This document shows, in pieces, positions 10,469-54,500 of a DNA stretch of 64,000 nucleotides. Both the position numbers and the translations under genes were made by a program. The notes under the pieces were generated by a model. It did not search any database and was not told where the DNA came from. It saw only the letters and a program-made list of their open reading frames with translations. The stretch's first letter is position 1, and every line of letters starts with the position of its first letter. Location: assembly GCA_950097015.1 (NCBI GenBank), contig CATNEN010000030.1, forward strand, positions 4,340,001 to 4,404,000. The letters run 5' to 3'. Origin of the DNA: Macrostomum hystrix (lineage: Eukaryota; Animalia; Platyhelminthes).

Positions 10469-11252
10469 ATGCAGCCGACGCAGTTGATGCTGCCCACTCT
10501 ATCGCTGACAATGCACCCTCCGCAAATTCTGCTCGCCTTAGTGTCTGCCTCATCCAGCTACCATCAGCAGCAACTGCAGCTGATTCAGCAGAACAAGCTC
10601 ATGCAGACCCACCAGAAGAGATTCGACTTTAGCCGGCTGGTCGAGTCCTGTCTCAGTGTCGAGTCGGCCAAGCCGCTGTCCCAGCACCCGCCACAGAGAG
10701 AACTACATCGCAGTGACAAAAGGTAGGCAAAATAAATAAGAAGACGCACTCACTTAGCATTGAGAGCCAGTAATGACCTGCTATCCAGCAGGTACTGCAC
10801 CCAGTAATTAGCAATAGCCTGCAATCAAATTGCCCAGACCTTGCAATTTGGCTCGCTTTCAGACAATTGCCGGGGGACCTTGTCTTCCCAGCAATTCGGT
10901 TCCACCTCGAAATGAACTTTCTACTTTGTTCAGCGATCGGGTGCAAGAAATTAGTTTTCTGTTTATCCACAGCAATCGAGTCCGCAAGGAGTACGTGTGC
11001 AAGTACTGCAGGCGCCACTTCACCAAGTCCTACAACCTGCTGATTCACGAGCGAACTCACACTGACGAGCGCCCGTTTCCCTGCGAGATCTGCGGCAAGG
11101 CGTTCAGAAGGCAGGACCACCTGCGGGACCATCGCTACATTCACTGCAAGGACAAGCCGTTCAAGTGTGACGTCTGCGGCAAGGGCTTCTGCCAGGCCCG
11201 CACACTGCAGGTGCACCGGACTCTGCACATTAGAGGACCGTCTGGGCCGTAA
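10469..11252 (+). CDS. osr: Odd-skipped-related C2H2 zinc-finger transcription factor, paralogue A (3 fingers)
   Basis: Exon 10362-10722 (first in-frame ATG at 10469) encodes RFDFSRL and splices in phase 2 to exon 10973-11252. That exon encodes [32 protein letters not shown]...[14 protein letters not shown]...[10 protein letters not shown], the diagnostic Odd/Osr finger sequence. An upstream exon ends at a GCAAAG|GTGAGT donor at 10299. Confidence 0.92.
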
Positions 11253-13616
11253 ATGCTTGTATAATTCCTTGACTACGGATTTTTACACTTGCTCAAGCCT
11301 TGTACTGATCTCTGCGGAACATGACCTTTTCTAACCTGGTAGTTGTGGGCTAGATAATGTCAATGAATTCATCAGCAATTTTAAAAACAAAAGCATTCGA
11401 AATCTTTGCTCAAAGGTGCCAGTTTTCATTCGTTTACTTTTTCATGGAAGCTCAACTGCTAAGCCATTTGTAAAGGTTTCCTTTGTCTACATAGAACAGA
11501 GCCTCCCTGTCCTCTAAACTTACAGTTCCGAGCCCTAGTAGGATATCTAACAAGGAAGGATGCTCGTAAAAACGCTTCAAAAGATTTTCCTAGTTTCTTC
11601 ACTCTTCTTCTAAATCTTTCACTTCCTCGCTCTGTGAAAGAAAATTATTCGGTGCTAATTTAGTACATGCGCACTATGGAAAAAACTAAACTTAGACGCA
11701 TTTCATCTAATATTCGTTGTACTTTTCTTATAGTAAGACATATAGACTCAAATGCTCTACTTGGTACATAAGCGCTACAGCTACATCACTTTACATTTTC
11801 GTTTCCTATACAGAATGACATTCAATGCTATTTCTGTATATTATACTGACTATTATACTGTCTATTATAGTAGACTGCGCGAAAGAAAAAGTGGGCATTC
11901 AGTGCAGGATAAAGGAAAACCTCATTTAGCTGATTGATGCCTTCTTGTATTGCTTCGTTTTGTACATATACGAGAGTGCGAGAGAACGAGATCAGTACCA
12001 TTCTTTCGTGCCCAGAAATCTATAGACTATCTGTCTCCGATAGTACAGTTTTACTGGGTATGAGTTCGCTCAATGCAGAAAACCGAATGTTTGATCGAAT
12101 TACCGAACGCCATTTAAGTTTTTTAAACAGTCAAAGAGTTCGGTTTTTTAAGCAAAAGATTAACTTTATCAAAAACTATCGAACTATCAATTAGGCTATT
12201 TGGCTTTACATATATGACCAGGTGAATTGTAATGCAACACTAAATGTACTTTACTCTCCGGATTATCTTATCCGTATACTACTCGTATTATCATACGAAA
12301 TCGCTTCTCATACTTGACATAATCATTTATATGCTCTATTTGATACACACTGACTAGATGCTATATGATGCACACGCAATGACCACCGTATGAGTAGAAG
12401 GACGGAAAAGCAATTGCTTCTTAGAAAAGGCTTTTTAGAGGCTGTAAATATACAATGCAGATAGGAAATGTTTTACCTTATATGCACAAATGTAGTGACT
12501 GTGTTTGGTTTGAGGCTCATATTTTAATATTATTTTATTCATTTATAGATTCATCGATTTCTGACAAGCATTATTTGTAAAAACATAATTTTCATATTAT
12601 TCTATCTTTTTCTCTACATGCCTACACCTGTGCCTAAAATTACAGTAAGCTCTTAAGCAACAAAATCACCCGGAAATTAGCATTTTGTTTTCTACGTCCT
12701 CTGATCAGTCATTAAGTCATCATTATATTAATTCATTAACATAAATATATTACAAAGTTTCTCTTCTGCTAGACTCTAGCTTGATAACTAATTTATTAAT
12801 GTATTCCTAGACCCCATTTATGTTATTAGGATTGGGCTAGCAAAAAATAATATGAAGATAAACTTTGAAGAATAATGCTATTGTACTCGCTGGATCATCA
12901 TGTTAGGTAAGTTATAACGAGTTTTGGATCTGATTCCAATAAAAACAATCACCATTTAAATGTGAAAAAGTGAAATCTGCCTCCTAAAATTATTTTTAGA
13001 AACGTAGCTTTCCGTTATTCTACTCCTAGTCGGCCCTTAATTCTACGCACAGCTAGCGAAGTTTTATCACAAAGTCTCGGCGGTATGAGCGAGCCAGAGT
13101 TTTTGTGTTTATTTTGTGATGTTTTGGCTATAGGAGTCATTAAATGCGGGCCCGATCTGTGGCAGTGGGTTAGCATAGTACTCATTTCAGAACCATGGAG
13201 CAGATACTTCCTGAGAACATACCAAATAATTATCCCTGCTTTGCCTGTGCTCCAGGTGCTCTAGAGTCACGTAGTGCCTTCGAATAACACTTTTTATATT
13301 AAAAGCACGCTTCAATTTATTTGAAAAATTGCGATTTTCAGTTTATCTGACGAGAAACAAAAAAATGCGAGTGGGAATAAGAGGGCTGCATGCCCACGCA
13401 TAGCGCATAAAAGGAAATTAAAATGAAATTTTTAAGTGCTCAGGCTATTGAGAATTAATGTAGCATGCTGTTGAGTAGAGACGCTTGCTTGCTTTGAAAT
13501 CAATGGGAGTATGAGTGCCTAGAGGAAAATACAATGATAATAAGTGTAGAGTATCTTAATTTGACGGCTTAAAAAATCGCTGCCTGCTTCAAAAAGCAAG
13601 AATTTTTGCATGCATA

Positions 13617-51593: not shown

Positions 51594-54500
51594 CTAACTG
51601 ATTGCTGTGATTACCTGGTGACTGGTGTGCAGCGTCCGGTGCACCTGCAGTGTGCGGGCCTGGCAGAAGCCCTTGCCGCAGACGTCACACTTAAACGGCT
51701 TGTCCTTGCAGTGAATGTAGCGATGGTCCCGCAGGTGGTCCTGCCTTCTGAACGCCTTGCCGCAGATCTCGCAGGGAAACGGGCGCTCGTCAGTGTGAGT
51801 TCGCTCGTGAATCAGCAGGTTGTAGGACTTGGTGAAGTGGCGCCTGCAGTACTTGCACACGTACTCCTTGCGGGCTCTGAGGAAGAGGTGTTGATTAGGT
51901 TTTTATAGTTTTTAGAGTTCATTTTTTATTTCCTCGAATTTCTCTAGTTAAAAAAGCCAGTGCCTGATGAAGTTCAATCGATAGAAAGTTTAAAAAAATC
52001 GTTCACTTCTTGCACTCAAGCATCAGGGCTTTGATAAGTTAGTTTCCATGCATTCATAGTGGGTGGGGCTTTTATGGTTGAAAGCTTCGAACCCCGCTCA
52101 ACAATAACATCTACAATGCGTCCCGATATAAAGGGATCAAAGGTCTGCGCGGGAGGCTGGGCGAGGACCTCATGTCCAGTCACGCAATGCTCGCACAATA
52201 GCGGACTGTGGAGTACGAGCTAACTGCTCATTTCCAGGCCACGTGACTCCAGCACCTTTGAGCAGTGATTGCTCTGTAAGATCTTCTAGGCTTATTTTTT
52301 TCTGTCACCTTTTACAATATCTATTATGCTCAATATTAGAGCCATTTGTCCCTGATTGTGGACCTCCGAATGGGTGCCAGTCGGGATATGTTTAATGCAC
52401 TCAGCCATTCACTGTCTGTCTGACTGGCTCCTTAGTAACTAGGCACTAAAGATATGAGCATGAGCCAACTGCTGGTCTGGTTGGTGATTTTCTCTGGTCT
52501 CACATGGCTGGCACTCAGGGGCCATATTCAGACTGTCTAAACTTTTGTTGACATGCACCCGCTTAGACCAGCCTCAATGATCACCGAATGTTCCAGACAG
52601 ACCTGCGCTTTCGAGTCTGCACCGCTAAGCACACCAGCCTGTCTGGCAGATTGTTGAGAGTTTGACTTCCCATCATCCACTTGTTTATATCCCATTGCCC
52701 CCTGCTCACGTAGGAGTGGCGTAACCTGATATTGAGCCATTCCCATTATGTTTAAACATGAAGAGTTTGACCCACAGCAAAGCTTTTCAATTGTCCAGCG
52801 CTGAGCTCGTCATTGAAGCTAGACTGCATGGGCCTCAGCACATCTGGACCTGCAGGCATGGACAAACAAACTGGCACGATGGCCATGTGTGTTGGTGGTA
52901 TACTCGCTTGCTTGAAGCATCTGCGATCACCAGTATAATAATGTTAGAGAAGGGAAAGGGAAATCATAATGTGCCAATGCCTTATTCAATCAAATTTCCC
53001 CGGTGTAAAAAAACTCGTGCGAAAGTTAAACAAGACTGTTAGAGAAAAAAGACAATGGCTTCTCACCCGAATATAAAGGAAATGAGAATTGAAGGTGCTA
53101 ACAGGTTCAGGCCAGTCTTGGCGGGCCTATATCCATAACTATCACAGATAGCGAAAGTGCGAAATACTCGTAGCTTTCACAAAGAGACCCGCGCAAACTT
53201 GCAGCGCATGCAGCAGTGAGACGTGCCTATGCAAACAGATTCTTTACCTATAAAACATCATGAATTAGCATAACATGCGGGCCACCCACTCTCTCATGGC
53301 TGGAGAAGAAACAGATATCTCTGGACTCCAAATAGGGTTGGAAAGCAAGCTGATGGACTCGGACGAAAATCAGCCTACTGGCTCATTGCGGGTGCGGTAT
53401 CCGGGCCCGCTGAGTTGTGCTTACTGCAGCATCAACTATGCAGTGACTATAGCAGCAAATCTCACATTTGCATACCCTAAAAACCTGCCGGGTGCATCCC
53501 AACTGCAAAATATAACTCCGTGCCATTTTCTCACCAAGCTATTAATCGTGTGTTAAAGAATCTAATTTGCCTAATTGGGCTTAGGAACTAAATAGAAATG
53601 ACAATTCGGCTTTCTAGAAAGGAAATTATAGAGCTTTAAAAAAGCTATCAAGCATGGTGGGTAGAGTTTCGGGGCAGACGGCCTTGGGTCCAGTTGTTTA
53701 TTATTTTATCAGCACCTGCAGGATCTTGGGCACTGTCATTGTCACCTGTTGCCCGGCCATAAGATGCTGTACAGAACTTTTTTTAAAGGAAAGTTTTAGA
53801 AACGCAACCTTGTCTAGGGAATAATTGCGTCACTTGTTACCATGGCTACCAGCCCAACAGGAGGTTCACGCTACATCATAAGCGTGCCAAACATTTTTTA
53901 GATCTTCCATCTCTCCACCGGATGCTCACCTGCCGGGTCCTCGGCCTCGTGGCTTGCGCCCGGTCGGCAGATTGGCCGCTGCTGATGCGGACGCGGCGGC
54001 CGCCGCTGCCACAGCTGCCGCTGCCGACGCCATGAGGTGATGCCCGCCGCCGAACTGCATGACAGCCAGGGGGCCGCGAGACTGCGGCACAACGGTTGAG
54101 TCTACTCGGCCGTCATCCTCACCGCCTGAGCTCACACCTCCACCAGCGCCCTCCGGGGTGGAATCGGCCGAGTAGATGGAGGCCGCCTCGTCCGCTGCCG
54201 GCTGCTCGGCTGCCTCCGACGACTCGTCCTCCATGCAGGACTCGGCTAGGCGGGTGAAGTCAAATCGAGGGCGCTGCTGCTGCTGCTGCTGCTGTTGCTG
54301 CTGTTGAAGGCGCTTTTTCTGAGCCGACAAAAGACGATGGCGTTGCTGCTGCTGCTGCTGCTGCTGCTGCTGCTGCTGCAGCTGGTGCTGTGCGGCGGCC
54401 ATGCGTTGGCTGCAGCCCAGCATGTGATAGAAGCGCAGCAGCTGATGGTGCCAGTAGGCCTGCGACATTGCGGCTGCAGCGGCGGCGGCTGCGGCGCCCG

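Follow-up and report, generated by a model that had tools for sequence, protein, structure and literature searches.

Evidence for domain-limited concerted evolution of the zinc-finger block of odd-skipped-related genes in Macrostomum

Gene conversion between the old mammalian paralogues ZFX and ZFY, which are gametologues on the sex chromosomes, is limited to the last C2H2 zinc-finger exon. In Capitella teleta, the duplicated developmental transcription factor genes Dlxa and Dlxb lie inverted, tail to tail, and encode divergent proteins that share nucleotide identity, silent sites included, in the DNA-binding domain (McDougall et al. 2011, PMC3199776). Hexapod engrailed and invected, cited in the same source, are an old linked pair with a homogenised DNA-binding domain, in which trees group the genes by species. 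Theory of interlocus gene conversion and the duplicates left by whole-genome duplication in yeast, with tracts of up to several hundred bases, document long-lived concerted evolution in coding DNA whose non-coding surroundings are no longer alignable (PMC3924837). Here we analyse a 64,000-nucleotide (nt) stretch of the flatworm Macrostomum hystrix (assembly GCA_950097015.1, contig CATNEN010000030.1, positions 4,340,001 to 4,404,000; hereafter the window), in which two odd-skipped-related (Osr) genes, Osr-A and Osr-B (hereafter A and B), lie in inverted orientation some 40 kb apart and share a nearly identical block of three zinc fingers. We conclude with high confidence that A and B belong to a set of three or more old Osr paralogues that predate the split from Macrostomum lignano, and that their finger block has been homogenised by repeated interlocus gene conversion.

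The finger block shared by Osr-A and Osr-B

The longest inverted repeat of the window pairs 10978-11229 with 51626-51877, and within it a gapless, in-register comparison defines the shared block, for which the repeat, Pfam and the alignment with M. lignano agree:

10982..11229, plus strand: converted three-finger block, copy A
51626..51873, minus strand: converted three-finger block, copy B

The two copies match over 248 nt with two mismatches, at 11162/51693 (TTC/TTT) and 11222/51633 (ACT/ACG), both at third positions and both synonymous, as a reading of the bare sequence (hereafter the sequence-only reading) had reported. The block comprises 82 codons with identical translation and about 52 synonymous sites, and the proportion of differing synonymous sites (pS) is 0.038; the silent identity noted earlier is thus real, although the free positions amount to these 52 sites rather than to the 80 or so wobble positions first counted. 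On both sides similarity drops to background. Exon 3 enters the block after 3 nt in B (exon from 51876) and after 9 nt in A (exon from 10973); the block ends one base beyond the last His codon, inside the exon, so that both limits are exonic as first described, with the 5′ limit lying very close to the exon start. Outside the block, the sole DNA match between A and B covers 31 nt at 81% identity over an upstream RFDF motif, where pS is 0.77.

This degree of silent-site identity exceeds what selection or codon bias would be expected to produce, as the controls have a pS of 0.46-0.78. The tandem Lifeguard pair of the window, already cited in the sequence-only reading for its many third-position differences, has a pS of 0.72-0.78 and a longest identical run of 20 nt. 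Under saturation, the probability of two or fewer differing codons is 6e-27 with the codon usage of the window and 8e-11 with the biased usage of the block itself, under which about 21 differing codons are expected.

By sequence, A and B are members of the odd-skipped/Osr family. The block contains three Pfam zf-C2H2 domains. The nearest protein is from M. lignano (99%), followed by named odd-skipped and Osr proteins at about 80-85% identity. An upstream (R/K)FD(F/Y)..LA motif is present in A, in B, in the two M. lignano genes described below (A′ and C′) and in mollusc and nematode matches. In other spiralians, a developmental role of Osr genes in excretory organs or gut is established (bioRxiv 10.1101/2020.11.15.378034). 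A barnacle pair with identical fingers was considered as a parallel case and ruled out, being the same gene along its whole length.

The M. hystrix assembly combines PacBio long reads with polishing by short reads (PMC10468722); collapse during assembly or polishing could in principle have made two different finger exons look alike. The read-derived contigs make this barely credible. A 942-nt RNA contig (run X2) spans A from exon 1 to the poly(A) site and has zero differences from the window in the block, so A is expressed as assembled. Both letters of both mismatch sites occur in short-read data; T at 11162 and the B-type junctions are found in a DNA run (X1), and T11162 and the B-type tail with its 3′ junction recur in RNA of another study (X5). 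In the DNA run, the depth of the block is 197, as compared with 80/66 at the A-type junctions, 153/156 at the B-type junctions and 75-91 at other single loci, that is, about 2.5 times single copy, and the sole other finger path of any length belongs to a far-diverged gene (D, below) with 39 differences in 213 nt. Neither the RNA nor the DNA contigs thus conceal divergence that the assembly lacks. Moreover, five M. lignano loci in an unrelated assembly present the same homogenised pattern in different letters.

Comparison with related species and further gene copies

The genes neighbouring A and B in the window are 69-82% identical in DNA to those of M. lignano, with pS 0.65 and a synonymous divergence per site (dS) of about 1.5-1.6. 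The M. lignano loci L003 and L005 (BOX15_Mlig021760) are syntenic orthologues of A (A′), sharing with it the same two upstream genes, upstream non-coding DNA and a downstream gene in the same orientation. The exon-2 protein scores follow this orthology (A-A′ 136, A-B 96, A-C′ 65). Loci L001, L002 and L004 (Mlig031583), beside CBP/p300, represent a third paralogue, C (C′), which shares contig and strand with A′ at a distance of about 288 kb. The age of the duplication follows from the orthology of the flanks together with the neighbour-gene dS of about 1.5, which place it before the split of the two species; the sequence-only reading had called it old on other grounds. For A, this rests on synteny and exon-2 scores, and for B on the transcript of its orthologue from a related species and on an M. 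lignano protein with a tail of B type. That protein, P0151, has fingers identical in protein to those of the window and a tail that reads HTGHQIQE...KCD; judged by this tail, P0151 is probably the M. lignano B. No protein matched residues 110-225, encoded by B exon 2, at E<=0.001 in a search that covered subjects of 0.55-1.75 times the query length.

The finger blocks sort in the opposite way. In a comparison of 246 nt, the differences number 0-1 between A′ and C′, 2 between the window copies and 16-17 between any window copy and any copy of M. lignano; 15 sites are diagnostic for species and 0 for paralogue. A tree of the block groups the copies by species with support of 100/100, and a grouping of the blocks by orthology was rejected (log-likelihood, lnL, -63.7; P of the approximately unbiased test, p-AU, 4e-65). 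A′ and C′ share DNA over 259 nt only, a tract that opens with the acceptor GCAG and closes 5 nt beyond the last His codon, and the polyploid copies of A′ and of C′ differ by 1-4% in their surroundings. The sequences thus speak for concerted evolution of the Osr finger block, independently in two distant Macrostomum species, and the recurrent, finger-confined ectopic conversion put forward in the sequence-only reading is upheld by the site counts and the tree test.

Run X9 derives from a species more closely related to the window species than M. lignano is, and contains a B orthologue; of 60 visible flanking bases, 5 differ from B (about 92% identity). Its block differs from window A at 11 of 252 nt. 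At 11072, 11108, 11109 and 11168, X9 and M. lignano have one letter and the two window copies another, which indicates that these changes arose after the split from X9 and then spread to both A and B. These shared derived letters, together with the separate M. lignano block, point to conversion that was recent in the window lineage and separate in M. lignano.

Protein constraint combined with extreme codon bias, or with an element acting at the RNA or DNA level, could instead hold the codons without any exchange. The GC content at third codon positions (GC3) of the block is indeed 0.87-0.90 (71-74 of 82), against 0.61 (50 of 82) expected (P 3e-7), and the between-species pS of 0.29 is well below the 0.65 of the neighbouring genes. 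The first 24 finger codons (10983-11056; 51872-51799) do not differ at any nucleotide between the window species and M. lignano (post hoc P ~1e-4 under the codon usage of the block), while the remainder has a pS of 0.40, and gene D departs from the block by a single synonymous difference over about the same 24 codons. Yet the same constraint permits 15 differences between orthologues and 0-2 between paralogues, the codon usage of the block itself would leave far more differing codons than are found (above), and gene D, with a GC3 of 0.81, has a pS of 0.46 to A over the 57 codons compared. Three of the four derived letters common to window A and B changed from G/C to A/T, which runs against the bias. 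We consider this explanation very improbable as the sole cause, being contradicted by the species-diagnostic sites, although codon bias may contribute to the first 74 nt; there, the invariance could stem from frozen G/C-ending codons, from a splice enhancer close to the acceptor or from another constraint at the DNA or RNA level. The earlier argument that protein-level selection alone cannot keep the codons identical stands. GC-biased conversion in the tract is unproven, since the GC3 of gene D is also high and the recent polarised changes in the block are mostly from G/C to A/T.

A third copy, C, is probably also present in the window species, outside the window, to judge from junction depth. 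The B-type junction contigs of the DNA run (40 and 37 nt) have twice the single-copy depth. Their ends lie 6 nt upstream of the acceptor G and at 11228, the 3′ branch point being 11228/11229. After the last His codon, M. lignano C reads CGC and B reads ACC, a difference that would create a branch exactly there. Gene D, also outside the window, brings the Osr-like genes to four and is expressed, with contigs of 1604 nt in DNA and 1076 nt in RNA. Its intron position is that of B, its DNA identity is about 80%, and its fingers are altered, for example to NQM from NLL and to RRRD from RRQD; D may have dropped out of the exchange and acquired another specificity.

Several points weigh against repeated conversion as the full explanation. 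The evidence consists of assembled contigs of DNA and RNA runs, and the DNA run may have served to polish the window assembly, although independent data come from X5, X9 and the assembly of M. lignano. The cross-species test compares an A-C pair in M. lignano with an A-B pair in the window and is thus not reciprocal for A-B. Of the 11 block differences in X9, only the 7 best supported are known by position, all of them synonymous. Finally, the low between-species pS (0.29, and none in the first 24 codons) indicates that some DNA-level constraint or strong codon bias also acts.

Gene structures of Osr-A and Osr-B

The exon structure of A was taken from RNA and that of B from prediction and the X9 transcript, as follows (UTR, untranslated region):

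9768..10150, plus strand: non-coding DNA upstream of A, 70-92% conserved with M. lignano A (L003 9472-9886), absent from B
10158..10299, plus strand: Osr-A exon 1, mostly 5′ UTR, with ATG 10292 and a phase-2 donor (RNA contig X2, frame check; M. lignano layout alike)
10384..10722, plus strand: Osr-A exon 2, rich in Q, with the RFDF motif (10619-10651; joints from RNA)
10973..11414, plus strand: Osr-A exon 3, fingers, 7-residue tail, stop 11250-11252 and 3′ UTR to poly(A) (RNA)
56157..56295, minus strand: Osr-B predicted coding exon 1, poly-Q, phase-1 donor (prediction without RNA)
53930..54608, minus strand: Osr-B exon 2, with poly-A/poly-Q stretches and the RFDF motif (54267-54235); the orthologue transcript of the related species (X9 loose end) supports its 3′ end and phase-2 joint
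51615..51876, minus strand: Osr-B exon 3, fingers plus TSHQ
51418..51456, minus strand: Osr-B coding exon 4, ISESVSTMGKCE-stop (X9 loose end)

The X2 contig includes the joint 10299/10384 and encodes 208 residues from ATG 10292; a second RNA contig over A exon 1 begins at 10131. The B protein ends in HTSHQ/ISESVSTMGKCE, with the joint to the fourth exon seen in the orthologue transcript. The non-coding DNA common to window A and M. lignano A, and not to B, supports the orthology of A and is a probable cis-regulatory region.

The sequence-only reading had dated the duplication by shared intron phases and a shared first donor. Intron 2, before the fingers, is indeed in phase 2 in all genes compared, but intron 1 is in phase 2 in A, both in the window and in M. 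lignano, and in phase 1 in M. lignano C and after the predicted exon 1 of B, and the first donor, GCAAAG/GTGAGT in the window, is GCACAG/GTGAGT in M. lignano A, so that the match between A and B is probably coincidental. The argument from phases and donor thus fails for intron 1, and the age of the pair comes from orthology. At 10973-10981, the RNA-confirmed acceptor of A exon 3 lies 6 nt upstream of the site used by B, C and M. lignano A; the acceptor at that site is mutated in window A (AG to CG at 10977-10978), and the intron sliding adds two residues.

Within 10292-10632, an alternative acceptor at 10361, unused or minor, would yield an out-of-frame product of about 92 residues from ATG 10292; the RNA contigs over A intron 1 use only the acceptor at 10383 and none uses 10361. 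Beyond the poly(A) site of A, a separate X2 contig of depth 4 (11582-11770) perhaps represents a longer 3′ UTR. An element ATAATAAAA..GCTT upstream of A resembles one upstream of B (~56435-56420), and a GC-rich, poly-Ala-like stretch in the predicted intron 1 of B (55330-55553, minus strand) may represent either a further exon or regulatory DNA.

Mechanism of exchange and relation to known systems

In the mechanism that we favour, purifying selection on the three C2H2 fingers would keep just that stretch long and similar enough for ectopic pairing, and ectopic homologous repair would then copy it non-reciprocally among A, B and probably C, giving one species-wide sequence. The N-terminal exons, introns and tails, having diverged long ago, would no longer pair, and the tract would end where protein-level conservation ends. 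The route would be DNA-templated repair of double-strand breaks, and conversion would be a by-product of selection rather than itself selected. The sequence-only reading held that conversion keeps the DNA-binding domain identical; the 82 finger residues are, however, identical between the window species and M. lignano at a neighbour dS of about 1.5, so that selection alone could hold the protein, with or without a benefit from conversion. Nor does the inverted 40-kb geometry have the special role suggested for it, because A′ and C′, in direct orientation and 288 kb apart, are more alike still.

Conversion templated by reverse-transcribed messenger RNA, rather than by a chromosomal copy, would likewise be restricted to exons, and the tract does lie within one exon, its start coinciding with the acceptor or adjoining it in both species. 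At the 5′ side the limits of exon and homology coincide, however, so that DNA-templated repair predicts the same, and the 3′ end falls inside the exon. Furthermore, the 40-nt B-type junction of double depth implies 7 intronic bases common to B and the inferred C, A′ and C′ share 4 intronic bases (a weak point, as these are consensus-like), and no intron loss was seen. We regard an RNA template as improbable.

The geometry would also permit reciprocal recombination between the arms, which would invert the 40 kb and swap the C-terminal tails, either recurrently or as a polymorphism, with crossovers renewing the identity by conversion. Among the paths listed for the X5 RNA (10631-11229), only A exon 2 enters the block, carrying T11162, and both tails leave it. 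Contigs merge bubbles and clip tips, which explains these partial X5 records as well as a chimera does. The X2 contig joins the 5′ part of A to the A tail only, and the X9 transcript joins the 5′ part of B to the B tail. In M. lignano, the same downstream gene stands in the same orientation beside an intronless tail of A type, and a crossover between A′ and C′ would delete rather than invert. We consider this account quite improbable. The inversion and tail swap envisaged in the sequence-only reading are thus opposed by both gene order and transcripts; no inversion has been fixed between the window species and M. lignano. The gene order and tails conserved across species and the A5′-A3′ and B5′-B3′ transcripts show that the exchange is non-reciprocal, alongside which rare reciprocal events may occur. 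Taken by itself, the X5 graph (A exon 2, the B-type T11162 and both tails) may reflect a conversion polymorphism, a chimera or a contig artefact.

The interval between the arms holds about nine genes, among them, from their translations, a probable ATP synthase subunit c, a malate dehydrogenase, a butyrobetaine dioxygenase-like gene, the two Lifeguard genes and a sugar transporter. Long minisatellite arrays lie in or beside it (32994-35472, 37694-39831, 40467-43450, 44157-45326 and 59950-61800), one with a 33-nt unit in about 82 or more copies.

A single recent exon duplication or shuffling event could have placed the same finger exon in two unrelated genes, as the DNA-level unalignability of the flanks might suggest. 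Both genes, however, carry the RFDF motif upstream and are interrupted by a phase-2 intron ahead of the fingers, and orthologues with the same layout each have the block of their own species, which would require repeated events and which, in A′ and C′, refutes the idea; we give it next to no credence. In a further reading, which we consider unlikely, the three paralogues would form a maintained network with one DNA-binding cassette evolving as a unit across the genus. Conversion would itself be favoured (or be started by the invariant first 74 nt), passing binding changes at once to three differently regulated effectors, and rare alleles with swapped tails or in inverted form may also arise from the inverted A-B arms.

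Repeated conversion, as we favour it, adds no new mechanism, the process being known from other gene pairs; what it offers is a developmental regulator in which concerted evolution limited to one domain is verified across species, over 40 to ~290 kb and in either orientation. Literature searches on gene conversion or concerted evolution of odd-skipped genes, and on odd-skipped genes or gene conversion in Macrostomum, returned nothing relevant by title or abstract, and a degenerate DNA pattern for the Macrostomum finger had no match in metagenome contigs. Among searchable papers, this is apparently the first such case noted for the Osr family. Trees based on the fingers would misdate and misassign the Macrostomum Osr duplicates, and RNA interference, in situ probes or read counts directed at the finger exon would hit all three genes. 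With several genomes and many transcriptomes, Macrostomum is a system for asking whether conversion follows homology preserved by selection or is itself selected.

Within the Osr family (OSR1/2, odd, sob, bowl, drm and nematode odd-1/2), A and B have the three Osr-type fingers of the other members, with the FDF motif upstream as in mollusc and nematode members. Unlike A and B, whose fingers differ at 0 residues, paralogue pairs of snail and krill differ at 5-10 finger residues, and the short tails of A and B lack an FSI.DI-type C-terminal motif. The window genome has at least four Osr-like genes (A, B, the inferred C and the divergent D). In contrast to the yeast duplicates (PMC3924837), conversion in Osr concerns a regulatory gene, and there only a single domain within a single exon. 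Hexapod engrailed and invected differ in having a homeobox rather than zinc fingers and in belonging to another lineage. The Capitella Dlx genes resemble Osr-A and Osr-B in being an inverted pair with identity confined to the DNA-binding domain; their tract, however, is a 150-bp homeobox segment that reaches into the intron, in two close genes of one species, whereas the Osr tract is a C2H2 block of 248-259 nt, at probably three loci, over 40 kb (inverted) and 288 kb (direct), and is species-specific in two species.

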